Below the pieces are notes generated by a model. That model worked only from the letters and a program-made list of their open reading frames with translations, searched no databases and had not been told where the DNA came from. This document shows positions 1,924 through 64,000 of a DNA stretch of 64,000 nt, one piece after another (the stretch's first letter is position 1; each line of letters opens with the position of its first letter). The DNA lies in the NCBI RefSeq assembly GCF_040938485.1, contig NW_027271001.1, positions 3,906,001-3,970,000 of the forward strand. The letters are read 5' to 3'. The position numbers and the translations under genes are program-made. Origin of the DNA: Diadema antillarum. Taxonomy: Eukaryota.

Positions 1924-10621
<8,698 letters not shown>

Positions 10622-16941: not shown

Positions 16942-21342
<4,401 letters not shown>

Positions 21343-24476: not shown

Positions 24477-25491
<1,015 letters not shown>

Positions 25492-26015
25492 TCAGCTCCT
25501 TGCCGACGTGTAGTGACCACGGGCGTAGTTGTTGGCGGCAGTCCTCCTTGCCAGTGATCAGCTGTTCGGGGGTGGAAAAGCTGGCGGTAGGTTCCGGTAC
25601 GGACTTCATCTGCAAGGGTAGAAAGAAGTTCAAATCATCCATGAAATTATTTATTGTGTCGGGCAATCGTTGGGTAATTGTGTCACGATTGTTATTTTAA
25701 AAAAAAAACTGTAATGAGAAAATCATTTATTTAGACTGTTTGCAATCTTTAAATATTTTCAGTGTACCCTGATGAGATGATCCTAGAATAACGACATGAG
25801 TTTTCACTAAATTTCATAGATGAAATGACTGATCAATCTCCTTGACATTGATATAGCTAAGAAAAGAAAATAACAAGTAATAATATACTACACATAAAAA
25901 CGACATATCCCATTGAAAACTGATTTATTGAAAATATGATTTCATCAGTTGTATGATGATCCTAAAAGCATAAAAGTGGTTCTACTCCACCCTCTTCTAC
26001 AACATGACAGCATCA

Positions 26016-26258
<243 letters not shown>

Positions 26259-31041: not shown

Positions 31042-36877
<5,836 letters not shown>

Positions 36878-40829: not shown

Positions 40830-44610
<3,781 letters not shown>

Positions 44611-44830: not shown

Positions 44831-45885
44831 GCAAAGAGCGTGCTTGCATTTCAAGGGTGTGCCTATACAGCTTTCAACAACGTGCTGCTTTGTGGGGCAT
44901 ATCATAAATGTTTGATTTTAAATGTCTCCGCGGACTAGAGCGCTCAATTGATCATGGTGATTGATTATGAAAATCACCACTTCAACCATTTATTTTTTTC
45001 TGTATTTTAACTTTGCTGTCTACAGTTTATTCTATGTTGACGAGTATAACGGGGGGAAATCAACGTTAATGCAAATCATTGCTCATTTTACATTGCATAT
45101 TATGCATCTTTCTCTTACTGTGACACCGAGGGAGGTTAGTAACCTGCTCATTAAGCCCCTCCCACAGGGCGGGTTTAATTGCGAAGTAAATTCGAATTTG
45201 TTGGCATGTGAACATTTCTCCGATGAATTGTTAGCGAACAGACAATTTCCGTAGTGTATTACAATTCATGGATGTTTCTTTTCCTGCAGCAGTCTATAAT
45301 AAGCCAGTTCACAGTTAGCTCATGGACAAATTGGTACAAAGATCTTTATTTTTTCTCAATTGGTTAGGCACTTCACTCGTTAATAAAGCAGCGTGATGCA
45401 TAAGCGTGCTCACAATTTATGGAATTCACGTTCAAACAAAGAATGAATTTACGCAGAGCAGGTGACAAGAATATGGTCTGTCAATTGACACTCCGGCAAG
45501 CATTCATTTTGTCGTTTTGTGTTGAATGCATAAACAAACTTTTTCTACCAACATTGCTAAATACCAGGCTTGCTGTAAGGTGGATATTCTGGTAAGCACC
45601 ATTCATAAGGGTCACATGAATAATCATTACATCAGGGATGCTTATCTCAGTGAATAAAAAAAAACAAAAAAAACCAACGTACCTGATTGTACAAATGACC
45701 TTTTTCTGCTCATGCACAAAGTGGAACTGTAAACTGGCTTATAGCAACGAAGCATTTTCATTCACCTAGTGCTCCCTCCAGCATAGGTCCTCAGACAAAG
45801 AAAAAAACAAAAGTAAACAGACAAAAAAAATCACCCTATGGTTGCTAGGTAGGGCAAGCCTCCGACCGGCTTTGTGGGCGTAGTG

Positions 45886-45927
45886 TTAACTCTTAATGTG
45901 CCAGGCCCAAAACCCCTAACGTGCCAG
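45886..45927 (+). repeat. piggyBac left end: TTAA, 14-bp TIR and inner repeat TAACGTGCCAG (45917-45927)
   Basis: TAATGTGCCAG (45894-45904) recurs as TAACGTGCCAG 23 bp inward. The inner copy matches the right TIR exactly over TAACGTGCCA. Confidence 0.7.
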
Positions 45928-48900
45928 AGATTTTTAGCCAGTGCTCGGAAGCTCCGAATCTGGATAGACAGGGTAATTTCAAACTGTCATATCTCTGTAA
46001 TTACTGCTTGTTTTGAAATGTTGTCTGCACAAAAAATGTGGAGAAATGGTAGTTCTTTCGTGCCATGTCGTCAGTTTGCAGTAATATTTATCCTAATTTG
46101 AAATATTGCTGAAAGAAATCATATCATAAAAAAATTATTAAGAAATTTTGGGTAGCATGAAAAGGAAGAATTAATTGTGAATTTTCTTCAATAGAACGTG
46201 TGTTTGACTCTGTGACAAAGTTTTAGATATACATTTTTTCTTTCGAATGATACCACATTTGTCAACTAGAGTCGTATACTTTCCGAGATATTCGCAGTTT
46301 GTTTTGCCCATGCAATTTACTTTTTTGACCGAGTAGTTCATTCCCAAACTTTGGTTATTTAGTCCCGGTTCCTCTTTGAGAGTAAAGGTAATTGTCCCGG
46401 GTCTTGGAGGAGAGTCTTTCCACTCTTTTATCCATTTGAGCAGGAAGTGCCAACAGTAATCCCTCTTTTGTTAGTGTGAGGGGCGAGCGTGCCCTATTGA
46501 AATCGGCAGTCCTTTGTCGGTGAGGGGCTCGTTGGCGTGCGAGCCCATGGTCACAGGCGGAGATAATCCGAGGATGCCTTGAACAATGTGCTACACTGTC
46601 GGACCAAAAAATATCTTATTGACAATGCGGCGCATGCCTTCCTTATTATTTCATCAAAAGTCTACGAGTAATCGATCAATGGTCAGTTCCTTGTTTTGCG
46701 TAGCTACCCACCACCAAAGCGATCGCGGCATGACTAAAGTGTAACCTTAGTAACTTCATAACAACGACGCGTGTTTGGCTCACAACAAGCGATTTACTCA
46801 CAGCACCACGAGGACAGCCGCTGAAACCTGCAGTTGAAGCCACGTGCTTGTTGCGCCTAGCGCTGGTTGAAACCAGATACGTGGAACAAAGTGGAATTTG
46901 AAAATATAGCACTACACATATCTACATAATCCTCATTCTGAAACGTTCACCAGATTTTGAAGAGCAATCAGACCCTCATCTAGGTCTAATATTCCCGCGA
47001 ACTGTATGCGAACATCGTTTTGTAGGAATATGAAATTCTCAAACTAATTAGTCTATTTCAAAATGAAGGACATAATGGCACACAGACCAAGAACTACACA
47101 TCCATATGAAATAAACAAAGGTTACTGATAGTGCATTTGCGTGCACTGCAGTGCGGTGATTCGGGGGGGGGGGGGGAGGCGTAAAGAAAGGGAGAGAGTG
47201 ATTTTTGGTTTGCGTATTTCTGAATATTTCAAAAGATTTTGATCGGTAACAATATCATTGTTTACTGAAATTATTTTGGAGCTTAGTGAGTTTCATTTTC
47301 GTATCGCACCAATATTATGACCATGTGAAAAAACTATTACTTTGCTTTTTGACGTGATCGGTACATTGGGTGTTGGGTAACACTTACAAACAGAATATCA
47401 GCGATATTAGAGGTATCCCAGAAATTGTACTTCACTTCGGAAAAGTGTTTTGATGCTGGACCTTCGCATGACAGCAGATTCATTTCCCGACATTTTAACC
47501 GCTAACGTCTCACAACCTTAGTAATATCGGAGAAAACTGCAAAATCAGAATGTAAAGTCTAGCACTCATCCGTCGCGAAAGTCATGCATCCACACATCAA
47601 AGAATATGATCAAGTCAAGCACGCATCCTTATGTTTTGAAAAAAAAAAGAAAATATATATAAAATTGTTAAACATTATATGATTAGTATGATCACGTTAT
47701 TTGAGGTAAAAAAAAAAAAACATGAGGGAAAACATTTGAGGTGCAGTAAAAACTAAAATCTTTCCAACAAAATTACCATGATGCAAAATGATAGAAAGAG
47801 AGAATCAAAGGACTTCAAAAATCATCGTACCCGTGTAGCAGCTATAAAGAAGAAGGCAATGCTGGTAAGTGGGATTGAGCCGCCGGGGCAACAAAATATC
47901 AAGCAAAGAAACAAGATGTCAATCAATCAAACAAACAAACAACGAAAAGAAACTACAAACATAAAGACAACCTTTAGAAACTCTGCTAATGTGGGTTTTT
48001 TTGATGTCATTATCTCTCTTTTGAAATTACGTCTCCTTACTCGCTAATCGCTCCTGATTAGTTTACGTTATTCAGCAGTATAGTCAATACAGCTATCTTC
48101 TGTCGGAAGATCTGAGGCGCTTTTCTTATTGCTGCTAATTCTGTTCACTACACGTCTTGTAACTCAGAGTGTCATCTTTTTCTCTAGCAGAAACAGTATT
48201 TACACTCTATACTGTCGAAGTTCAGTCGTCCCGGTGTAGCGTAGAATGCTAGCTTCATTATTCATACTTTTCTTTATCAATTTTTATGATTTCGATCACT
48301 GATCGTGCCTTTGCATAAATCAAAGTATGTGCTCTGTCTCCCCCTCTCTTTCTCTCTCCCTCACTCTCTCTTTATATCTTGCCCCTCAACTTCTTCATTT
48401 CTGATCGTTGACTTGTTATTCACATTAGGCATAATTGACTGTGAAGTTACGATAATCTCAATGTCAATAGTAATCACTATCGCTGCAAAGGAAGGGGGAA
48501 GTTTTCGCCGTCTGGTTCATGAGTTCAATTAGATGCGCTCAATGATGATAATAATTATACATAATAAATGAATGCATGTACACGCCAAATACAGAATGAG
48601 CTGTTTTTCACGTTTGTAGTTTCGTATACACCCATGCAATCACTCGTATGCTGTAGGATGCATATAGGATGATGCTTCATTTCGCTACAAACTGAAGGGT
48701 TTCAAGGAATGAATGCAGAACACAGGTGGTACTGAAACTCATATTTTGTTGTGCACAGAAATGAAGCAAAATATGCTATAGGCAAAGGGAGTCGAAGTAA
48801 TTCCTGTCAAAGATTAATTTGGAAACGTGTTTTACTGACCTAAAAACTCAAACCATGTTCAATAAAGCGTAGGTGTCACGCTAGTATATAAGTTTCATTC

Positions 48901-49575
48901 ACAGGCTTCGACTATAACTATCATAGGGCTCTTCTAGTCTTCATAAAACATGTATCGTTTTCTTGCAGCTCCGCGATGCTCACTGCATTTGAAAGTCGAC
49001 CGAAAGAACTCTCACAAAAGGCGAAGTTTGTATATGCTTATACTGCGTTTATTCATGAACTAAAGCTTTCTTTGAACATGCAAAATCTTCACAACTTATG
49101 CTACCATCAGGGGAGGTCTCTTGAATTCTTGGTTTCTGTTCTGTACGTTGCTCTGATTGACTCTTCTTTCTTGGTAAAGACCCTATCTGCGCTAATGATA
49201 ATCATTTCCTATTTTTTCTCACAGTCCGTCGAAATCAGAGGCCTTCCTTCAACACCCTGTCATTACCACATTCTTCATACAAGGTACCCCACGTATTTCA
49301 AGTACCTGTATACAGCTTGTTGATTTTCTTTTTTTGATAACAATTAGATGCATTACTGACATAATCACTTCTTGAAAAATGTACACGAAAATCGTTGGTA
49401 CAATGCATACAGTCAATCCACGTTGCTATAGACATGATGGAGGATGGTTATGGAAATACATGTACGGACCCATCACAACAGCCACGTCCCACCGGTATCG
49501 AGACAGGAGTAATGCAACTGGAATGGACAGAATTTGAATCTGTTTTGAAAATTGAATAATACAGAGCTAAAAAAT

Positions 49576-50574
49576 GATAGTTTGATTTTTTTAAGAACAT
49601 GTGAATACCTCTAGTATCCAAAATTCACGGAAATGGGTATTGTACTGCACGCGATCTTCAATTCTGATCTGTGGTAACAGCGAGTTCTTCAGATCGGCGA
49701 CGCTAACATCAAGACGGCGCAGATTCCCGTGTTGGACAATGATCATGGCTGTTGGCTGTGTCGCGCATGTTCAGAACATAATGATCTGCCTGATTAGCGT
49801 CCTCTTAGCGTTTGCGAGGCAAATCTTTGGTTCGTGTTTATACCACTGTGTGGTCAAGATGAGAGAGATGAATTGCAAGTTTTATGATTGAAACTTGTCT
49901 GTGTTCTTTCTTTCCTTTTTCTCGCAAAAGCTGATTGCTTTTCTTATAGGCTACAACACGGTATTATGTATCCTGAAGAAGCTTTGCAAAGCGGAATAAA
50001 CAAAAAAATCTGACTGCAGCATGAAGGAGAAGCATTTTATGTTCTGCTTTACATGGTACATATTTTGTCCTATACTATTATGACAGAGAAGAAGCGCCGT
50101 CTTAGGTTATCAAGCGCAGTCGTTATAACATTATATATATATATACTTCTATATACATGTCGGTAGAAAAGATGAAGAAGTAGAATGGTAATGAATTTTG
50201 AAAGTCCGAATGTGCTAATAAATAGCACTGTTGGACTGTCAAAATGCATTACCACTCTACTTGTTTATCTTTTCTTTACTGGTACCAACACGCGGACTAC
50301 GAGTTTCATAATACATAATCATAATCTATATATATATAGCATACAAGGTGAAGCGGCTTGGCCTCCTACGTTGTGGGTGCTGCATTATATTCATGTGTAG
50401 GTGTGACGGGAAAGACTGCTCGCAGATGTTGCAGTAATGTTCACTAATAGCCTTTTACTCTCCCAAGCTTTCGACCGAGTTACCAGTCTTTTTCAAGGGC
50501 TTGGAACGTAAACACAAAAGCAGAAAAGCAACCAATTTGCATACATTTGAACAGAATAAGGCAAAATCGTATAT

Positions 50575-50653
<79 letters not shown>

Positions 50654-52428
50654 CAACAGTAGGTCAATATAAACTCCGTTGGAGACATAAATTTGACGCA
50701 TTTTCGCCCATAGGGCTTTGTCAAGTCAATACATTTGACACTTTACGTCTCCAACGGAGTTTATATTGACCTACTGTAGTGAATCTATACTTTCTTAGGA
50801 CTCCGAGAANNNNNNNNNNNNNNNNNNNNNNNNNNNNNNNNNNNNNNNNNNNNNNNNNNNNNNNNNNNNNNNNNNNNNNNNNNNNNNNNNNNNNNNNNNN
50901 NNNNNNNNNNNNNNNNNNNNNNNNNNNNNNNNNNNNNTCGACCTTGTACAGAACAAGTGTACATGTAGCTACTTCATTATTCATCCAGGGTGAGAAGATA
51001 AGGGCATTCACGAACGTAGTTCAACGAATGTGTGTATACGTGGAACATGTACGTTGAATTATCTATACGTCCATGAATGCCTTTATCTATTCCCACTCTG
51101 CATATTATGTATGTATGTATATCTTTTAAATCGACATGACAATGCTTTATTGAAATGAATATTTAATTTCTTTTCAATATTTAGTTCGTTGACATACTTG
51201 ATGAAACCTAGATTTACAGCCCACAATCAATTGCGCGATAATATAGTCTGTCACAATCATTCACGTGTTTGATTCTGCTGGCAGAAAAGGTACAATATGA
51301 CAGGGAAAAGGTAAGGTTGACATTCGCAATTGAGGTGTTGCCAGTTCAAAACACTCATTCCCCATTATTTTACGAGTGTTTACAGACCGATATTCTTGTT
51401 TCGACGGGATATGTTCATATATTTCCATAGTTTGACCAACGAAATACTGACACATGTTTTTCGAATGTAACAAACCATGACCAAGGTTGGATATCATGGC
51501 CTTCTTTTGTCTGAGGCGGTCTTTCGGTAGGCGCTTTCATCTATGCAAATAAGGCACTCTTATTGTATTCGCGGTGAGGTGGCGTGGCCATGAGACATCT
51601 ATTCACGCGTGCCGCGCCTTTATTATGGGCTAGGTTTTGGAAATAGGCGACACTCTTTCTTTTCAGGTCTTTCAAACGAAAGTTTTATTCTAGAGCTATA
51701 ATAACCTTTGCTTATACGTGATTGGCGAAGGTATCGAACGTTGATAGTTTTAATCCTGCTATTCTATCACCCGAACTGATCACATTGACTTACATAAGAA
51801 GGGGGAAATTGCCAGTGATCATCATTTATCTCGATCGATAGTGTGATTTTTTTATGCACATGTGAATACCTCTAGTATCCAAAATTCATGGAAATGGGTA
51901 TTCTACTACCCGCGATCTTCAATTCTGATCTGTGGTAACAGCGAGTTCTTCAGATCGGCGACGCTAACATCAAGACGGCGCAGCCTCCCGTGTTGGACAA
52001 TGATCATGGCTGTTGGCTGTGTCGCGCATGTTCAGAACATAATGATCTGCCTGATTAGCGTCCTCTTAGCGTTTGCGTGGCAAATCTTTAGTTCGTGTTT
52101 ATACCACTGTGTGGTCAAGATGAGAGATGAATGGCAAGCTTTACGTTTGAAACTTGTCTGTGTTCTTTCTTTCCTTTTTCTCACAAAAGCTGATTGCTTT
52201 TCTTATAGGCTACAACAACACGGTATTATGTATGCTGAAGAAGCTTTGCAAAACGGGATAAAAAAATCTGACTGAAGCATGAAGGAGAAGCATTTTTATG
52301 TTCTGCTTTACATGGTACATATTTTGTCCTATACTATTATGACAGAGAAGAAGCGCCGTCCTAGGTTATCAAGTGCAGTTGTTATAACATTGCTGAATTT
52401 ATAATTGTATGTAAGATACATATATTTT

Positions 52429-52477
<49 letters not shown>

Positions 52478-53146
52478 CTATATACATGTAGACAGAAAAA
52501 ATGATGATGAAGATGAAGACTGTCAAAATGCATTACCACTCTACTTTTTCATCTTTTCTATACCTACTGGTACCAACACGCGGACTAAACGTTTCATTAT
52601 ATATAATCATATATATACAACATATAAGGTGAAGCGGGCTTGGCCTCCTACGTTGTGGGTGCTGAATTATATTTATGTGTAGGTGTGACGGGAAAGACTG
52701 CTCGCAGACGTTGCAGTAATGTTCACTAATAGCCTTTTACTCTCCCAAGCTTTCGACGGAGTTACCAGTCTTTTTCAAGGGCTTGGGACGTAAACACAAA
52801 AGCGCGCAAAAAAGCAACCAATTTGCATACATTTGAACAGAATAAGGCAAAATTATATATATTATAAAGATACACATATGTGTATTAAAAATATGAATAT
52901 ATATACATATACATATATACATATATATATATATGTTGATAAGGTAGCCCACGTGTTGGCAAGATAAAAAGATAAGTAACAAAGCTGTAACAAAGTTCAT
53001 GCTGTATTCACCAACGGTTTATTTCTTCACACAAATTTTCGAGCGTCTCGCCGCCCTTTCTCAAGTGTTGATACTGAGAGAACAATAACAAAATTCATTT
53101 TACATTATTGTATTATTCATTGTATTTTTGTTACTTATCTTATATA

Positions 53147-53201
<55 letters not shown>

Positions 53202-53408
53202 GAGAGAGACAGAGCGAGAAAGAGAAGGCGCCTCGACCTTGTACAGAACAAGTGTACATGTAGCTACTTCATTATTCATCCAGGGTGAGAAGATAAGGGC
53301 ATTCACGAACGTAGTTCAACGAATGTGTGTATACTGTATATACGTGAAACATGTACGTTATCTATACGTCCATGAATGCCTTTATCTTTTCCCACTCTGT
53401 ATATATGA

Positions 53409-53453
<45 letters not shown>

Positions 53454-54176
53454 TGTGTCTTTTAAATCGACATGGTAATGGTTTATTGAAATGAATGTAC
53501 TTCATTTTATTACAATGTTTAGTTCGTTGACATATTTGATGAAACTTAGATTTACTGACTAAAATCAACTGCATGATAATTATAATTTGTCACAATTATT
53601 AACGCGTTTGAATCTGCTGGGAGAAAAGGTACAATATAACAGGGAAAAGGTAAGGTTGACATTCGCAATTGAATTACTGCCAGTTCAAAACATTCATTCC
53701 CAATTATTTTACGAGTGTTTACAGACCGATATTCTTGTTTCGACAGGATATTTTCATGTATTTCCATAGTTTGACCAACGAAATACTGACACATGTTTTT
53801 CGAATGTAATAGACCATGACCAAGGTTGGGTGTCAAGGCCTTCTTTTGTTTGAGGCGGTCTTTCGGTAGGCGCTTTCATCTATGCAAATAAGGCACTCTT
53901 ATTGTATCCGCGGTGAGGTGGCGGTGGCCATGAAACATCTATTCACGCGTGCCGCGTCTTTATTATGGGCTAGGTTTTGGAAATAGGCGGTACTCTTTCT
54001 TTTCAGGTCTTTCAAACGAAAGTTTTATTCTAGAGCTATAATAACCTTTGCTTATACGTGATTGGCGAAGGTATCGAACGTTGATAGTTTTAATCCTGCT
54101 ATTCTATCACCCGAACTGATCACATTGACTTACATAAGAAGGGGGAAATTGCCAGTGATCATCATTTATCTCGATC
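49576..54176 (+). repeat. Head-to-tail tandem duplication of about 2.3 kb (copy A 49576-51836, copy B 51837-54176)
   Basis: Both copies start gatagt(t/g)tgattttttta and end ...gccagtgatcatcatttatctcgatc. The last about 185 bp are identical; spot-checked 60-bp blocks elsewhere differ at 3-6 positions. Confidence 0.95.
50657..50776. mobile_element. 120-bp MITE with about 30-bp TIRs (CAGT...ACTG ends, Tc1/mariner-like)
   Basis: cagtaggtcaatataaactccgttggagac / gtctccaacggagtttatattgacctactg|ta. Present only in duplication copy A, next to (TA)n. Confidence 0.75.
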
Positions 54177-54263
54177 TCTCCTGCGATTCAACAACGTTAC
54201 TGCTTCATAATCTCTAAATACTCTATCAGTCTCTCCTGAATGAGCTAAAGTGTGCTCGCTTCT

Positions 54264-56111
54264 ATGGCTCCACCGAGAAAACGGCGAAGGCGTGAGTTCA
54301 CTGCCGAGGAGGTCCGTGATTTCATGTTGGACTCTGACTTCGAAATCGAGGATATTGTAGATAACAACTGGGAAGAAGACACGCAATCATCTCGTAGCAG
54401 TGAAAGCACAGAAGAACGTGATTCCTCACGTCTTCTCCCGGAGTTTGAAGAGCACGGTGAATCACTGTTTGAAGACTCGTCAGGCGACGAAGCTGATGGA
54501 GGTGACGATGACCACCTCAATGATCTACCTCCGCCTCATCCAACAACTCATGCTGAACCACTCTCCGATCACGATTGGCGGAGACTTGAGCCTGACGAGC
54601 GATTCAAGTCAAGTCGACGAGTGTATGACGACCAACCCAGACTACTTTTCGACGCTGAAGGATTGGAGCCAGTGGACTTTTTTACGAAGTTCTATCCGAC
54701 TCCCATCTTTGCCCACATAGCAGATGAAACGAACAAGTATGCGCAACAATTCTTCGATTGCCCAGCGCCCCTCCCAGAGGCTTCTCGATTCGGCGTATGG
54801 CTGGACACCGATGAGGAGGAGATACGCGCTTTCACCGCACTTCAAATAGCGATGGGACTGGTGTCAAAGCCATCTGTGCCTCAGTACTGGGAAACGAACT
54901 CCGACATCTTAGTGACTCCTGGGTTTGCCGACGTCATTTCCAGGAATCGATTTCAGCTATTGAACACCTTCCTTCATTTCAATGACAACGAGAAGCTCGT
55001 GCCCCGTGGACAGCCCGGTTTCGACCCCCTTCACAAGACGCGCCCCCTCATCGATATGTCCCAGCCGACGTACCTTGAGCATTTCCTTCCCGGGGGATAC
55101 CTGTCAATCGACGAGAGCTTGGCGCCGTTCAAAGGAAGAATCTCCTACAGACAGTACATCCCAAACAAACCACGGAAATGGGGGATAAAATTCTGGATGC
55201 TCTGTGACGCCCAAACGGGATTTTGTCTGCGGTGGCGGCAGTATGTCGGAGCCGAGGGACAAGACAATGGGGACAGCGCCACTGAAGCCCTGGTGAAACA
55301 GCTGACGGAGCCATTCTACAACACGGATCGCGTGATCGTGATGGACAACTATTATAGTTCCGTAAAGCTCTACGAGGATCTGTCACGGAACGGACTTGGA
55401 GCCTGTGGAACGGTGAGGAGCAACCGACGAGGACTTCCAGAAGAGATCCGACGTGGTGGTCTGCACCTTGCGAAAGGTGACGATCCCGTGTTTTTCGCCA
55501 AAGGGAGGGAGATGTCAGCAGTGACTTGGCATGACGTGAAACTCGTGAACGTGCTGTCGACCGTCAGCAGCAACGATCTCAAACAGAAGCAGATACGGAG
55601 TAAGAACGCCGAAGGAGGTCGCCGTACGATTCAGAAGCCAGCAACTGTTGACGTGTACAACAGGTTCATGAACGGCGTGGACAAAATGGATCAACGCATG
55701 TCCTACTACCGCTACCCTCATAAGAAAATCAAGGGATACCGCGTAACCTACCACTTCACCATGGAAGTAGCTCTCGTGAACGCTTACATCGCATTTCGCA
55801 TGGCTGGCCACAAGATGTCCACGCGCGACTTCAGATGTCGGGTGATTGAGGGTCTGCTGAACGGCTACAGAGCATCTCGCTATCGTCGGACACCGTCACC
55901 TCCCATCGCCGACAACGAGGCAAGACTGACTGAGCGCCACTTCCCAGCAGAGTTCGAAGATCGACAACATCGTCCTGACTGCTACGTGTGTTCGGACCGC
56001 AGGAGGGGAAGGCGAAGACAGACGAGGACATACTGCCGACAATGTGGACTTGCTATGTGTTGCATCCCGTGTTTCGAGATCTACCACACCAGAAAAGATT
56101 TCCGATCATAG
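54264..56111 (+). CDS. piggyBac-family DDD transposase, 615 aa from first ATG, intronless and intact
   Basis: Acidic N-terminus. Catalytic motifs LSIDESL...FKGR...YIPNKPRKWGIKFW, VMDNYYSS and YNRFMNGVDKMDQ. C-terminal Cys-rich domain CYVC...CRQC...CCIPC...H (7 Cys + His). GC-rich relative to flanks. The ORF track starts at GTG 54252; the first ATG is 54264. Confidence 0.95.
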   Translation: MAPPRKRRRREFTAEEVRDFMLDSDFEIEDIVDNNWEEDTQSSRSSESTEERDSSRLLPEFEEHGESLFEDSSGDEADGGDDDHLNDLPPPHPTTHAEPLSDHDWRRLEPDERFKSSRRVYDDQPRLLFDAEGLEPVDFFTKFYPTPIFAHIADETNKYAQQFFDCPAPLPEASRFGVWLDTDEEEIRAFTALQIAMGLVSKPSVPQYWETNSDILVTPGFADVISRNRFQLLNTFLHFNDNEKLVPRGQPGFDPLHKTRPLIDMSQPTYLEHFLPGGYLSIDESLAPFKGRISYRQYIPNKPRKWGIKFWMLCDAQTGFCLRWRQYVGAEGQDNGDSATEALVKQLTEPFYNTDRVIVMDNYYSSVKLYEDLSRNGLGACGTVRSNRRGLPEEIRRGGLHLAKGDDPVFFAKGREMSAVTWHDVKLVNVLSTVSSNDLKQKQIRSKNAEGGRRTIQKPATVDVYNRFMNGVDKMDQRMSYYRYPHKKIKGYRVTYHFTMEVALVNAYIAFRMAGHKMSTRDFRCRVIEGLLNGYRASRYRRTPSPPIADNEARLTERHFPAEFEDRQHRPDCYVCSDRRRGRRRQTRTYCRQCGLAMCCIPCFEIYHTRKDFRS

Positions 56112-57483
56112 GTCACAAACACTGAGTCTTCTGATGACATGAACTCTAAACAATGTCATGAACTTGTCGTGTATAGGCCTGTCTACCGTTGCTTATAGAA
56201 TATGCATGTTCAAATTACAGCTCACAGATGGCAAGCATTTCCAGGTGCATGATTCATTGTAATTACATGGACATTATTGGTTTTACGATCCAAGACTGAG
56301 ATGTATTGAAGTATAATCGCGATATCTGTCTGAACTTCACCCCAAAAGAAACGTTCCGTGTACTCTCACTTGTACTCATTTGCATGTACACAAAACCAGG
56401 TGGTTATTGTCTGTCAAATCGATCCCAATTACCAATGATTATGTCATTAGCCAGGGTAACGTGAAATCTTTAGACATGAATTTCTCTGCCAAGTTATCTC
56501 TCATATTACATTGCCTATTTACAGTGTACACACAATGTATGTACATTTCAATAATGGTGATATTCCCGTAATTGTAAGGATTGGTTATTTATTATCCGTA
56601 AGTCTTCGAAATAGTAATTAATAGCATTAAAAAAAATCAAATACTGTACAAAGAGATAAACGTTCATATTGATGATATGGTTATACACAAAATATCAATG
56701 ACAATGTGATAATTTATTGAGATGTAGCTCACAAGTTCTTGTATTATCAGAAAAGGTTGATATTATGGGTCAAATCGATCCCCATGAGTAACCAGTGATA
56801 TGCCAGTGATTGTGCCACTAGCAAGTTTATTATCAACTTGTACTAGTAATTTATTTTGTATACATACATATGTCCGACAAATTATGGAATTATGGATTTG
56901 TGTAGTGCTCATTACACTTACAATGTATACTTGTCAGTGGCAATTCTGAATCTCGATGGTATATTGTCGTGTTTATGAATTCAATGGTGTATCTTATCAA
57001 ACTTTAGATTATGTGGGGTTATTTATGTCATTGTGTAATTATTCCTTGGCTCTTCAACAATAAGTAGCCGCTGTCATGATTTTACAGCGAGTTCCACGAT
57101 CGCATTTGAATAAGTAATTGTCATATCACCACATATTACATGCATGTAAGTTGTCAATGTAAGAGCAGTGAATTCTTTTCCAGATATCACTAGTCATCGT
57201 GTGAATGAGGAATTGAAAATAAAGCATTATTCACAGTGACGAGTGAAAGAGATAAACTATACTCATCTGTTTCTTATTTGTAATTTAATCAGCGTTGCTG
57301 AGTGTGTAATGTCAGATCAAAGCTGATCAATTATAGTGAGATTGCAAAACTGAAGTGTATGTAACTACTGAAGGATACTAGTAGTATCTAGAGTTATTGA
57401 CGAGAGAAGGTGCAATGTATATTCAGTAACAGGTTGTATATGTGGAGTGAGATCAGTTTGAAGAGAGAATACTATTGCCAGAA

Positions 57484-57487
<4 letters not shown>

Positions 57488-57523
<36 letters not shown>
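57488..57523. repeat. (AG)n microsatellite; another at about 58251-58281
   Basis: Direct reading of the sequence. Confidence 0.9.
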
Positions 57524-57527
<4 letters not shown>

Positions 57528-58250
57528 TGACGAATGGAAATGGAACTCGACGTTCCAAAAATAGTTATCTATGNNNNNNNNNNNNNNNNNNNNNNNNNNN
57601 NNNNNNNNNNNNNNNNNNNNNNNNNNNNNNNNNNNNNNNNNNNNNNNNNNNNNNNNNNNNNNNNNNNNNNNNNNNNNNNNNNNNNNNNNNNNNNNNNNNN
57701 NNNNNNNNNNNNNNNNNNNNNNNNNNNNNNNNNNNNNNNNNNNNNNNNNNNNNNNNNNNNNNNNNNNNNNNNNNNNNNNNNNNNNNNNNNNNNNNNNNNN
57801 NNNNNNNNNNGGTCGTCAGTTTCTTCTTCGCCTAAAAACACAAAATCAAATAAACAACCGACAAACAAGACTCAAAAGCACACATACAAACAAAGCAAGA
57901 GTATGATTATTAGCACACTTAGTTGCATGTAAGGTTGGAAAAGTATAATAAGCGAAGCTGAAAACATGCACAACAAAGGAATTCATCAAATCATACACTC
58001 CATGCAAACGTACTGTACAACAACGTCAACATGTAAGCTAACAGTTTTTATATCCGCATCAAATCATACGAGACGCAAGGTACGAAGAAACAATGCACGA
58101 AGCCTTGTACAGCAATTCCTCTTTAGAGTATATAGTTCTCCCCCCCCCCAAAAAAAAAAAAAGAGAGAGAGAGAAAAAAAAAAGAAGAAATGAAATTCGC
58201 CAATAGGGTATTAGTAACAACAAGAGTTTGAGAGACAAAGCGATTCTGTC

Positions 58251-58281
<31 letters not shown>

Positions 58282-60835
58282 AGGGACAGGTGGATATTGA
58301 GGTTAACGTTACAACAATAATTTGAAGTTATTCATATATCATAGAGAGATATAATAATTTTACCTCGACTTCTTCACTTATTTTGTGAAGTAAAGATTTG
58401 AGTTAACGACATTCTTGTATGACCAAATTGCACCAATTATTGAATATTGAAAAAGGCTGCGTCTTGATCGTTTGTATGGATAGTACCCCTCCCCCCCCCA
58501 AAAAAAAAAGAACACACACACACACACACACATATCAAACAACACACAAACAAGAATCAAGGCAAGTTCCACAACAAAAGGTTTGATTATACGGGTACAC
58601 TTAGTTCTATCTTAGATTAGAACAAAAAAGCTAAGCTAAAAAAAGGTCAAAATCACGTTGCACTTTGCACAAATTACGTAAAACAGCGTCAGGTGTCAAG
58701 TAAGACAGCCTACAGTACTGTGATCTGTTGTATTTGCCAAATTTATTCACGAAATTTTGTAGAAGAGGAAGTGCAAGAGAGTTGCTCGCCAAGTATATGA
58801 GGAGCTCATTGATACACAACAACAATAAGAAGAAATAAAGACATATCGCGGTTCGATTCATTGCCCAGAAATGTCAAAAGTAATATCTTTATTTTGTATT
58901 TCCGATGGATTTTTCACCGAGTCAAAAATCCGTTATAAAACGATCCTCAGAAGTGTAACGTCATAATAATTTGCAGCCCTCGATACGTACGATAACAACA
59001 ACAGAAATGAAAACACGGCGCACTACGCGGTGCAGATAGCAATAAGGTTCGTAAGTCCACAGGGTTTTAGTGAGAGTTTAGTCAGTTTGAATGACTTCCG
59101 CTATCTTGGAAAGTCCTTCACGTACGTTTTTGGATTTGATCAATGTCAACATTGGAATTCCTTTTGTTGACTAGTTTTGTTGAGCACTTTACTATTTTGC
59201 AAAACATGGGACACTTATCGTCAGAAGAAAGTACACAATAAACGCATACAAAGGGCCAAAAAGATAGGACATTAGCTATCGCGATGTGTGCTTTGTGAAT
59301 GTCTATGAATCGTTTACTATGTATACAGTAGGAGAGCGGATCGTATCACCGAACGCCTTTTTTGTGGCTTTGAATTCAGCACAAAGTGGATGAAATGTCT
59401 GCAAAAAATAACACCGGTTATTCACAAAGTCCTGAAAATACGAATTCAGCAAAAGTACGCAAATTATTCACTCAGGTTTTTGGAGAATAGGCTTCAAGTA
59501 TATCTTTCTCTCCAAAAATTTAAAAAAAAATCAAAACTGAGTTGTCTTTTACAACCGCAAAAAAAAAATCGCATTATAATTAGGTACATGATTTTCGTAA
59601 TGACATAGTCAATGCTTTCACATCTTGTTCTTGCACCAGAACCACAATTCTTACCCAAGGTTCACTACATGTACCTACTAGTATTCTTACCGAGGGGAGG
59701 ACAAAGAGAAAAAGAATCGGCTAATGAGGCTCATTTTTTTTTCTCACCGCAAAATGTCTAATACGAACATTTTGAATAGTTCCCATGATAAAATCTTGCG
59801 ATAAATCGACATCTTCTTCTAAATCTGAGGTAAAATGTGAATTTCTTAACGTTTTTGCATTTTTGTGTTGCATTCTTTTTTTGCGGTTTCGGTCCTTATA
59901 AACGATTTGTGAGGCCAGTCTACGAGGTCCCGCGAGTATTGAAGATCGTAAGTACGCAGAAATATGCGTACGAAATTACTATGATGTCGGGCACTACCAT
60001 ACCAGCTGCATTATGTATTCAGTACTTCCCTTTCTCAAGGTGTGTATATCGAACTCTTTCTAGCGCTAATGATATTATGTAATGACACATTCATACACAA
60101 ATGGGACTATACCTGGGTATTTTTATACCCTTTTCACCTCCCCCTCTTTTTCTACCATTCTGTCTTTAGTCCTAAAGTACGCCAACCTAAATTTCTCCTG
60201 GTATTCACTTTCATTTGAACAAGGAGACCGGCAATGACAGGCTAAAAACAATGACGATCACGTCAACGCAAATTATATGGATGTGCCGTGCGGCTTAGTT
60301 CACGAGTCAAGTTTTCGCTTGCTGGTACGCGTGCATACACAAGGACAAAGGCGTTTTCTTCTTTTGTATCTGATTGTATGTAAGCGTCGGGACGATTACA
60401 GTACATCAAACAGACAAAAGGATGAAAGGCTTGACCGTCAAAATAAAAGCTGACCTTCTCTGAGGGACAAAATGAAAGCATGCTTTCAGCCGTCCCGCAG
60501 GACAGCATCCAAGCGGAACAAGACGACTGGAACCTCATAGAAAAGACACGCAGACTCAATAGCGTACACACGCGTGGTTTACCAATGAGACTTTTGATTT
60601 ATACACAGCTCACAGAGGGTGCGCTCACGCCGAATTTTCCCGGCGCGAAGAAAACATACCTTGTCGAAAAATCATGAATTTACTCTAAAAAATCCTATGT
60701 AAGCATACACAAATATTTAGTTCAAACGATAGATACACTTATCTGCTATCATTATATATCAATGGCAGTTTCATAGTGCAAGTAATTATGATACCACAAA
60801 CATTTTAATGAGCAGGAGTTTTCTTGCTCTTCTTA

Positions 60836-60907
60836 GTCGCCGATCGGCGACCATGGCACGTCAGGACTATGGTCGCCGATCGGCGACCATGGCACGTTAA
60901 GAGTTAA
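60836..60907 (+). repeat. piggyBac right end: two 25-bp direct repeats containing a perfect palindrome, TIR and TTAA
   Basis: GTCGCCGATCGGCGACCATGGCACG at 60836-60860 and 60872-60896. Perfect 22-bp palindrome ATGGTCGCCGATCGGCGACCAT at 60869-60890. Confidence 0.8.
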
Positions 60908-61004: not shown

Positions 61005-61369
61005 CCCTGAAATCCAAATGCATGTTTATTTGTGTTGATTTGCGTCACTTTTGCTGTGAAACGAATATCTAGAACATTCCATATATTTTTAACGATTTTT
61101 TTTCTTCTATTTTTCTTCAGATTACTTGGGAACGCCCACAAAAAAATCCTTCCAAACTAATATTCCTCAGATGACCTCATCTGTCAATCATTGCTGAGTT
61201 CTGAAATGTTTAACAAAATACATTGGAGTGCACCTTCCTATCGACTCAGCCTAACTTGCATGTTCCCTCGCCATGTCTTTTGTTAGTCACATTGATATCA
61301 CAGAAACAGTGATGTTAAGAATATCATAAATCAACACAAATCAACATGCATTTGGATTTCAGGTGCCCT
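61005..61369 (+). mobile_element. TTAA-type MITE family C, near-complete copy; a third degraded inverted copy lies at about 62400-62590
   Basis: ccctgaaatccaaatgcatg...catgcatttggatttcaggtgccct|TTAA. Shares ttcttcagattacttgggaacgccc with 37790-37817. Confidence 0.75.
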
Positions 61370-64000
61370 TTAACATGTTTAAAAACTGTGAATCAGTGTG
61401 TAGGCCCCATTGAACAAGTTGTTGCTGCTATAGTTTCCCAACATTGACTGAAACAACATCAAAAAGATAGCACTTTGCATGCAATATATTATTTTTGATG
61501 ATTTGAAAGAATAGACATGAATGAGTGACCATCAATGCAAAAGATTCTTTAATTCGTCGAAAGCCAACCTGAAAGTCGGGAACAACCTGTGATTTTGAAG
61601 AGCAAACAGTGGGGAATGTGTATATAAAGAAGACTCTTGACTGGGTTGTCGTGGGGTGGTGTAGAAGTGACTGAAAAAGGCAGGATCTGGCGCAGCAACG
61701 ATACTTTCTGCCTGTTTGTTAACAACATCACACAAAAGCAACACAGGTAAAGTATAAATATGTTGATGTATATAATTCATTTCGTATATTATATGAATTT
61801 TTTGTAAAAGTTTAGACAATATCATTTCACGATATGTATACTTTGTATCACGTTTTGATTTTCGTTGATTGGAAATAAACTATGATTGAACTGAAGTAAA
61901 AAATTGAAATAGCATAGCCTGATTTCTCCTATAACATACAGAAATATGACCAAGCTCAACTTTTGTTAGTGTAACGACATAACTGCTTTTGACTTGAATG
62001 TCATCTGAAAGGTGTTTCCAAGTTTCACTGAGGCTTGTCTGACATAGCAACAAGAATGTACACAATTTGTTGTGATACAGTAGAAATTAACCACTTTGAA
62101 ATGTCTGCACGTTAAATGAAGAGTGAGCATTTCCGCCGAATAACGTACACGTTGCATACAAATTGTATGCACACTTTGAAAAAAAAAACTGTTCGTGGCA
62201 TCCAAAAGGTTTACCTGAGGGTTCCCACAGACTTGCCTGACATAGCAATATCCAATGTATGCAAACTGGATTCCACGTGTTGAAAGGCATAGGGTATGTA
62301 GACCTTCAGGTGAACATAGTGAATGGGATAGTGATTCTGCACGTTTCTGCACGTTTCCATGTTACTAATGTGGTTAACTAAAGACATTGCAGGGTAACAA
62401 TCTTATGCAAGTTATGCTCAGTCTCTGTAGGGGAAGGTGCATTCCATTGTCGTTTGTTAATCGCATTGGTCCAGTTTCAACACTTTTACCGATGACTGAC
62501 AGATGACGTCACGGAAAGAACCTTGGTGTGTTTTTTTCTTTCTGGCGTATCCCAGAAATCTGAAGAAAATAGCAGAAATATTGTTTTACATTACAATACG
62601 GTACATATTGTTTAGATGATTCTTTTGGCCGCAAAAGTAATGATCAGGGTATAGCTTATCATAAAGCAATACAAGTCAACATGTAGTAGCTCTCCCTGAC
62701 TTGCCTGAAGAGTACAGGCCAACAAATTTTTCGACCTGTTCGATCCAAATAATTATATAAGCTCCGGTTACGTTATCATTTAGCTTTTGTTTTTTGTTCT
62801 GGTCTCACTATCAAAACCCCATCCCTGTTTATAAACTCTCCTGACTGTCATTGTTCATGTCATCAAGAGGAAATTCATCTGAAATAAGCATCAAAATCCC
62901 AACGGGTATATGCACCTTACTTTGACTAATTCACAATAGTATAGGTGTTACAGAACTACATTTCAGAGACTATACATATAATTATGATGACAGTCGTTGC
63001 TGATGGCATGCATCAGGAAAAGATATGAAATTGTGTTGTACGACCCCGGCCTGGTTAAAGTATTGCATAATCAAATGACCAAGATTCTGATACATATTTC
63101 GAGCAAATAAATCATAAGTAAAATTTATACCATGGACAACATAAGGAATTGGACATCAGGGGGCATTTACTTTTGAAACAAGAACACAGGTTGGGAGAGT
63201 ATTCACGAAAAATGATGAAAATCGATAATGAAAGTCAAGCTGCACATGAAACAGTGGTATAAACCATGATCAAATTAGATATAAGCATAGGTGATCGTCA
63301 TAGTGTATAAGGTTCCCAGAGGCCTGGATATAAAATCTCTACCGAAGTTCCTTTTGTCGTTGTTGTTGCAGTTGGAATGGATCAAAAGCAATAAATTTAT
63401 CATATCAAAAGATTGTGGAGTTGCGATGAATTATCAGTGGTGACTTTTGAGAGGAGAGAGGTTGTCGTTACTCAATCATAGAGCCATAATACTGTAATAT
63501 TTCTAAGGTCTGTGGAAAGCAGAGGGCAAACAATAATTCATAGGACAGAGGTGATGACGTCATCACGTGATATAGTTGTCTATGCAGAATTTAATTGTCT
63601 CTTACAACTCTTCAGTGAAAATATGTGAAACTTTGGATTTTCGTAACGTTCTTATCTTTAATGCAAAGTGTAATGCAGCTTATACCATTCAGTTTCCGTG
63701 AGTTTATATTCCACTGACCAGTCATCTGTTATCAACGTGAAACTGAAATAGCGTTGCATTTGAACCATTCGGCAAGAGAGCTCAGCCATGCTAGCTTCAA
63801 TGTAGGTAAAAATAAGATTATACCGGTCATTTTTTACTGTAGTCATTAGTATCATTATTATAGATGTGGCTGTTCTATCTCAGTCCTTCTCAAACCAGTC
63901 TGACTATACCCTCTTCTTCTCGGCTGCCACTTCCGCGTCTGTATAAACGGAGGGTATAACATCAAAAACACCATCGAATGCTGCCAACGCTCTATGAGAC

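Follow-up and report, generated by a model that had tools for sequence, protein, structure and literature searches.

The DNA considered here, hereafter the window, is a stretch of 64,000 nucleotides from the sea urchin Diadema antillarum (assembly GCF_040938485.1, contig NW_027271001.1, positions 3,906,001 to 3,970,000 of the forward strand), and its subject is a very long piggyBac element that occupies window positions 45886 to 60907. An initial annotation, made from the letters of the window, had proposed that this is a giant, cargo-bearing piggyBac with an intact transposase gene between two distant ends. The features of the element, which measures 15,014 bp between both TTAAs, are collected in Table 1; contigs of the D. 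antillarum assembly are labelled C plus a number, and the window is part of C113.

Table 1. Features of the piggyBac element, in window coordinates
Feature	Position	Strand	Basis
Left TTAA target-site duplication	45886-45889		TTAA at the same position in 20/20 other copies with unrelated flanks
Left terminal inverted repeat CTCTTAATGTGCCA (T variant)	45890-45903	+	Sequence and genome-wide terminus count
Left subterminal direct repeat, 2x TAAYGTGCCAG, 23 nt apart	45894-45927	+	Sequence
Left arm, no detectable coding sequence	45904-49575		No Pfam, Rfam or tRNA match, no splice joints
Tandem repeat unit 1, ~2.3 kb, holds gap 50810-50937	49576-51848		Self-alignment; absent from copies on C477 and C961
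Tandem repeat unit 2, ends ~75 nt upstream of the transposase ATG	51837-54188		Self-alignment
Single-exon piggyBac transposase, 615 amino acids plus stop	54264-56111	+	PF13843 match, structure alignments, annotation
Right arm, no detectable coding sequence, (AG)n tracts, holds gap 57574-57810	56112-60835		Family scans
Right subterminal repeats, two perfect 26-nt direct repeats	60836-60897	+	Sequence
Right terminal inverted repeat TGGCACGTTAAGAG, minus-strand reading CTCTTAACGTGCCA (C variant)	60890-60903	-	Sequence and genome count
Right TTAA target-site duplication	60904-60907		TTAA at the same position in 20/20 other copies

The element and its transposase gene

The ends are exactly as first described, with TTAA-CTCTTAATGTGCCA beginning at 45886 and TGGCACGTTAAGAG-TTAA ending at 60907, and they agree in inverted orientation at 13/14 bases, or 17/18 when the TTAA is included. 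Both start with CTCTTA, which fits the six-base terminal pattern of piggyBac elements, C[C/A/T][C/A/T][T/G/A][T/A/G][T/G/A] (PMC5381638). Each end also has subterminal repeats of its own, as had been claimed: on the left a pair of TAAYGTGCCAG copies (45894-45904 and 45917-45927), on the right the 26-nt direct repeat GTCGCCGATCGGCGACCATGGCACGT, present in perfect match at 60836-60861 and, 36 nt further on, at 60872-60897, with the 16-nt palindrome GTCGCCGATCGGCGAC inside each copy and TGGCACGT at its terminus. There are two GTGCCA motifs per end, and since their spacing differs between left and right, the resulting asymmetry resembles that of canonical piggyBac ends. The 18-mer terminus was found at only two sites in the window at up to three mismatches (0.11 expected), namely at the two termini; neither a closer partner end nor internal terminal repeats were found in the window even at this tolerance, which bears out the earlier statement that no nearer partner exists.

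Between these ends lies a single open reading frame (ORF) of more than 143 codons, at 54252-56111 with its ATG at 54264. Its product matches DDE_Tnp_1_7 (PF13843) at E 1.4e-86 over profile positions 2-349 of 349, in line with the intact transposase of the initial annotation, and an exact protein look-up returned an identical protein annotated in D. antillarum as "piggyBac transposable element-derived protein 4-like". The DDD triad is recognizable in D283, D361, and D473, whose aligned counterparts in the Trichoplusia ni transposase (chain 6x67_C) are D268, D346, and D447. Among solved structures, the piggyBat transposase is the best match (E 7.5e-45) and the T. ni transposase is matched at E 5.2e-37. 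Residues 572-613 (CYVCS...CRQC...CCIPC...H) align weakly to the piggyBat C-terminus (whole-database E 3.2), and PF13842 is not reported for the 615-amino-acid protein, though it is reported for its relatives.

Comparison among copies elsewhere in the genome points to a gene that is being preserved. A six-frame PF13843 scan found an uninterrupted 620-codon frame in 31/41 copies. When one set of 14 copies is compared for both regions, 6 of 1859 ORF columns are variable, compared with 39 of 3238 in the arms, measured on the outer 1.9 kb of both (Fisher p 0.0009), which is a roughly fourfold lower variability for the ORF; copies differ pairwise by 0.06% on average in the ORF and by 0.38% and 0.44% in the arms, all diversity figures resting on 14-20 copies. 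Further, five of the six ORF variants are synonymous, compared with 22% expected by chance (binomial p 0.003). Judged from these comparisons, the transposase is intact and apparently under constraint.

Copies, empty sites and short relatives in the genome

The D. antillarum genome is available as a 1.75 Gb uncollapsed diploid hifiasm assembly, with a haploid size of ~0.7-1.0 Gb and a heterozygosity of 2.52% (PMC13511894). When it was searched with 400 bp from each end of the element, at least 40 copies of each were recovered at 99-100% identity, and each left end proved to have a right end of like orientation on its contig, in most cases 14.6-15.3 kb away. A search with the ORF gave 43 first-look candidates, and every full-length one sits within such a paired-end unit. 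TTAA followed by unrelated flanking DNA was seen at 20/20 left ends and 20/20 right ends examined. The proposal that the ends pair as one ~15 kb element thus holds for ~40 copies with the same boundaries, with TTAA at 40/40 ends examined.

Empty sites were found by searching the genome with the flanks of two other copies. Opposite the 14.9 kb copy on C429, contig C1225 reads ...caatttgtgca TTAA atataagact..., and opposite the 12.66 kb copy on C477, contig C736 reads ...ccatatgaac TTAA tatggggcta..., each with a single TTAA; in both empty alleles the overlap of left and right flank is exactly four bases, TTAA. These observations support the reading that both ends bound one element, which transposes as a unit. 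The paired ends and the empty sites refute the alternative put forward at the outset, namely two solo termini without relation to each other; its broader form, in which a segmental duplication or an assembly artefact stands in place of a transposon, is exceedingly improbable: it would have to accommodate a constant end spacing on ~40 independent contigs, unrelated flanks in which TTAA always comes first, empty alleles whose junction falls at exactly the boundaries of the element, and a 5.7 kb deletion derivative that retains both ends. That derivative, C98:1966936-1972595, keeps the parts corresponding to 45886-47974 and 57268-60907 at 99% identity, with TTAA on both sides; lacking the transposase, it looks like a young internal-deletion derivative, that is, a newly formed non-autonomous copy.

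Among ~25 distinct insertion loci whose flanks were examined, only the locus of the window is found on two contigs. Given that 84% of BUSCO genes are duplicated in this assembly, loci represented by a single contig imply that most insertions are hemizygous. The second contig at the window's locus, C587, also carries the element; with 100% identity of its flanks over 3 kb, it possibly represents a second assembly of one haplotype.

The copies differ in ways that group them. Those on C477 and C961 are 12.45-12.66 kb long and have one internal repeat unit instead of two, the distance from position 50500 to the start of the ORF being ~1404 nt in them against 3752 nt in the window; they agree with the ~12.7 kb that had been predicted for an element without its internal duplication. 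Because these copies carry one unit, the duplication is a trait of the family, not an artefact of the window's locus. At least three sublineages, each comprising several insertions, can be told apart by the variants they share. One subfamily is marked by the absence of ~188 nt of the right arm (58856-59043) from ~12 copies, for example those on C37, C237, C2063, C727, C1974, and C134. In a further copy, C1957:339857-342453, foreign DNA of ~590 nt, probably a nested insertion, breaks the left arm near window position 47252.

As the divergence of the arms, ~0.4%, is well below the allelic heterozygosity of 2.5%, the burst that produced these copies is young, and the family may still be active in D. 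antillarum. That it has instead become extinct recently, leaving young and polymorphic copies of which nothing moves today, for instance as a result of host silencing, is a less probable reading. In its favour, current movement is without direct evidence, and no run on record as RNA contains element sequence; on the other hand, the frame is open in 31 of the 41 copies, pairwise divergence (0.06% in the ORF and ~0.4% in the arms) is small beside the allelic heterozygosity of 2.52% (PMC13511894), and nearly all loci are on one contig only.

The same termini are also borne by a much larger set of short elements. The exact 18-nt terminus occurs 530 times in forward and 522 times in reverse orientation, 1052 in the genome (control, 0 and 1), which corresponds to ~526 elements in the diploid assembly. 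About 485 of these are shorter elements without transposase, mostly 1.15-1.26 kb and some 3.3-5.5 kb long, and among the pairs listed the T variant stands at one end and the C variant at the other. Over the subterminal 500-700 bp, these short elements reach only 75-82% identity to the 15 kb element, compared with 84-99% among themselves. The coexistence of a perfect terminus with sequence diverged by 20-25% suggests that one transposase lineage serves all of them, and it may be inferred that the lineage of the 615-amino-acid transposase would also mobilise the ~485 short elements. No compact autonomous relative with the same ends was found, the 3.3-5.5 kb elements being without a transposase ORF.

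The other piggyBac families of D. antillarum that were checked have 26-32% protein identity and do not have the 18-nt terminus. Other piggyBac families of this genome were seen on C714, C640, C198, C456, and C515, on C109/C287, and on C718/C1226. In one of them a 597-codon frame is open in seven scored copies, and three more are truncated or have a stop; there are also pairs with 700-, 586-, and 584-codon frames, which may represent two alleles each or domesticated genes. Identity to the 615-amino-acid transposase is 26-30% for the representatives checked (597-, 700-, and 586-codon).

The insertion itself lies beside a five-copy alpha-tubulin tandem array on the minus strand (window 1963-43330), the left end of the element being 2.55 kb upstream of exon 2 of the last copy, which starts at ~43330. 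The main exons of the array are at 1963-3562, 16945-18093, 24516-25616, 31045-32181, and 40833-41969; the copy at 24516-26244, with 69% identity, stops, and frameshifts, is probably a pseudogene. A search for the first tubulin exon with the motif MRE[CV]I gave nothing, and exon 2 was mapped instead. No paralogous empty site was found within the tubulin array. The left flank (45300-45850) consists of high-copy repeats, with a summed contig depth of hundreds to tens of thousands in whole-genome runs and many joints and loose ends. To the right of the piggyBac, a ~370 bp element at 61005-61373 has 36-nt terminal inverted repeats (61006-61041 and 61328-61363); a genome search with the 693-bp flank around it returned 1,887 first-look candidates, and, with two exceptions, the contigs scored match solely the ~370 bp element, at 81-91% identity.

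Long arms and sea-urchin relatives

The bulk of the element is made up of its arms. The segment 49576-51848 aligns to 51837-54188 at 82-100% identity in blocks, which confirms the internal duplication that had been noticed, two tandem units of ~2.3 kb. Two runs of N, 50810-50937 and 57574-57810, both lie outside the ORF, and their continuity was judged from coordinates alone. The span across the first (50500 to 54252) is 3752 nt in the window and 3744, 3671, and 3724 nt on C587, C429, and C725; that across the second (56111 to 57900) is 1789 nt in the window and 1787, 1765, and 1772 nt on the same three contigs; and the offset between the tandem units is 2286 nt before the first gap and 2295 nt after it. 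This matching spacing in other copies indicates that the flanks of the gaps are collinear and that the estimated gap lengths are about right. The G+C content ranges from 28 to 49% across the arms and from 50 to 56% across the ORF, the arms contain (TA)n and (AG)n tracts, and the segment 46600-48600 is almost confined to copies of the element (74 candidates).

No gene other than that of the transposase could be detected in this DNA. Outside the transposase there is no open frame above 143 codons; no piece of a cargo ORF (at least 60 amino acids; 27 scans, a few of them overlapping) attains the Pfam cut-off; no Rfam family comes near its gathering score in the arms, and no tRNA was found; and a protein-atlas (language-model) search with the two longest cargo ORFs gave no usable match. 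Contigs from four public runs span 45900-50800 with no splice joint inside the element. The initial statement that no viral or otherwise recognisable gene is visible in the extra DNA has consequently held under Pfam, Rfam, tRNA, language-model, and read-based checks, and we conclude that the arms are devoid of detectable coding capacity. A TA-rich palindrome at 50157-50285 and its paralogue in unit 2 show a self-match on the opposite strand in every copy. The palindrome gave weak microRNA-family matches, of 35 bits against a gathering score of 70, and such microRNA-like Rfam matches on TA-rich palindromes, far under the gathering scores, were set aside as chance.

Relatives of the transposase are informative with respect to the length of the arms. 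In a word-based protein search, the nearest relatives outside Diadema are other sea urchins and one marine-metagenome group, with identities of 53% in Lytechinus pictus, 53% in the marine metagenome, 47% in Lytechinus variegatus, and 46% in Strongylocentrotus purpuratus. In L. pictus, a left terminus of clear homology, TTAA CTCTTACTATGCCATGCCCAATACCCCTATAGTGCCAG, stands 5.6 kb upstream of the ORF and keeps TAAYGTGCCAG, and no matching right end was found within 10 kb downstream. In L. variegatus and S. purpuratus it is the right ends that are homologous, ...ATGGCATGTTAAGAG TTAA and ...GGTGGCAGCTTAAGAG TTAA, each 2.0-2.4 kb downstream of the gene and preceded by several TGGCAC motifs, and no left end was found within 10 kb upstream. 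In each relative, then, one or both of the arms would seem to be long, a statement that covers one locus per species, with the second end not found.

Two further observations concern these relatives. Within the L. pictus locus (CM073236.1:337827-359692), the transposase gene lies between inverted arrays of a separate repeat (locus positions 1535-2865 and 18570-20230), 16-18 kb apart, at least 1.3 kb long, and with a unit of ~100-250 bp; the piggyBac left terminus, at locus position 4376, is between them. TTAA-flanked 14-nt inverted repeats 16,855 bp apart were entertained as the boundary of the L. pictus element and rejected, as the inverted similarity runs through them and belongs to the separate array. 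The metagenomic relative, a 609-amino-acid transposase with 53% identity, occurs on 13 marine-metagenome contigs of ~4 kb (ENA, including a TARA sample), and no terminus of this type was found within these ~4 kb contigs.

It is in this light that the question of cargo has to be weighed. The arms might hold a spliced gene of short exons, a non-coding RNA, or cis-regulatory DNA serving the element or its host. Such a cargo would agree with the recurrence of long arms in the three sea-urchin relatives, with a weak translated match of 53902-54024 and 51544-51684 to L. pictus (E 0.002-0.007), and with the coverage of the left arm by small contig sets of unknown library type. It is nevertheless quite unlikely, given the failure of every ORF piece and RNA family to attain its threshold, the lack of any tRNA or of a single splice joint in 45900-50800, and variation in the arms about four times that of the ORF. 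The largest ORF, moreover, is unequal between the tandem units (98 versus 142 codons), and a 2986-nt contig under a second species label (organism B) differs from the window at 42 letters (~1.4%), with 4/4 listed differences in the 143-codon frame falling on codon positions 1 or 2. Since the ~12 kb have yielded neither a protein or RNA family nor a tRNA or splice joint, the description of the element as cargo-bearing in the sense of genes is not supported; what stands of that description is the extra DNA itself, ~12 kb in the form of long arms. "Giant piggyBac" is, on the comparisons available, supported.

The element is thus very probably an autonomous cut-and-paste transposon of the piggyBac superfamily, which has undergone a young amplification and whose long arms have no detectable coding sequence and are not a cargo of genes. 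Mechanistically, the 615-amino-acid transposase would bind the 14-bp terminal inverted repeats and the GTGCCA-containing subterminal repeats, would excise the whole ~15 kb unit, and would reinsert it at TTAA with duplication of the TTAA. The family has amplified very recently in D. antillarum, and the extra ~12 kb consists of long arms that include microsatellites and the 2.3 kb tandem duplication just upstream of the gene.

Several points weigh against this account. Neither transposition nor excision has been seen directly. The empty alleles have perhaps never been occupied; they are no proof of excision but are compatible with precise excision. The search for an empty site suggested by the initial annotation succeeded for the sister copies on C429 and C477, but at the window's own locus no empty allele was found in the assembly, the flanks being held only by C113 and C587. 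Selection on the ORF is inferred from just six variable sites. Finally, the absence of genes from the arms is based on pieces of at least 60 amino acids, family scans, and contigs of uncertain library type, and short spliced exons or a non-coding RNA in the arms would escape such scans.

A more far-reaching idea is that the long arms are a maintained functional trait of the sea-urchin piggyBac clade, acting in cis or through a non-coding RNA, rather than accumulated junk, and that the transposase is naturally adapted to the efficient movement of substrates of more than 10 kb. This is unlikely; if true, the transposase would be a natural high-capacity transposase.

Known systems and implications

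The closest point of reference is the T. ni piggyBac (IFP2; PDB 6X67/6X68), which shares with the Diadema element the DDE_Tnp_1_7 domain, the aligned DDD triad, the TTAA duplication, short terminal repeats that begin with C, asymmetric subterminal repeats, and possibly a cysteine-rich C-terminus. The two proteins are distant (E 5e-37), and the T. ni element is ~2.5 kb long against 15 kb here, the Diadema element having 8.4 kb upstream and 4.8 kb downstream of its gene, unlike the T. ni element. The canonical T. ni terminus begins CCCTAGAAAGATA, from which the Diadema terminal sequence, CTCTTAAYGTGCCA, differs. piggyBat of Myotis lucifugus (PDB 9C0F) is similar in its catalytic core and, weakly, in its cysteine-rich tail, and is likewise a naturally recent multi-copy family with non-autonomous partners; it differs in being a compact element of a mammalian host.

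With regard to length, one survey of piggyBac-like elements reports 1,721-8,451 bp with a mean of 2,813 bp, the untranslated arms being the most variable part (PMC5381638), and a second reports 1.23-9.51 kb, with the longest in Argiope aurantia and L. variegatus among the long ones (PMC10813416). The long elements surveyed are, like the present one, non-viral and owe their length to untranslated arms, and its sea-urchin relatives are of the same clade, with ends homologous to its own. The Diadema element is ~1.6 times the longest surveyed and is present in ~40 near-identical copies, compared with two intact copies of the Argiope element of 9.51 kb. No larger non-viral piggyBac is described in the literature searched.

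Teratorn of medaka, a fusion of piggyBac and an alloherpesvirus of 41-182 kb with ~90 genes (PMC6431247), is similarly a very large unit moved by a piggyBac-type transposase between short terminal repeats. It carries herpesvirus replication and capsid genes, whereas no viral or second gene was found in the Diadema element. A Teratorn-like fusion, which would contain herpesvirus genes for DNA polymerase, terminase, and capsid protein, was rejected, the sole ORF above 143 codons being the transposase and no cargo ORF piece reaching a Pfam cut-off. A domesticated PGBD gene, which would be single-copy, orthologous, and without repeats, was rejected, since the ~40 copies keep their terminal repeats intact and occupy polymorphic sites that are unrelated to one another. 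Since the PF13843 domain, the DDD triad, the TTAA duplication, and the terminal pattern are all present and the marks of Teratorn and of PGBD genes are not, the element is an unusually long piggyBac and does not represent a new kind.

Natural DNA transposons are believed to be held to a short length by a transposition efficiency that declines as they grow, and natural efficiency is reported to drop above ~6 kb of cargo (PMC6431247). A 15 kb unit that has spread to ~40 near-identical copies despite this presumed limit offers a natural test of it, in a family whose insertions are polymorphic within a single individual and whose transposase appears intact and constrained. The transposase and its matching ends are, moreover, a candidate large-capacity system for sea-urchin transgenesis. 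The published account of the D. antillarum genome, in which the terms "piggyBac" and "transpos" have zero occurrences (PMC13511894), does not include this recently active repeat family, and its young insertion polymorphisms may serve the population genetics of D. antillarum, a keystone reef species hit by mass mortality.

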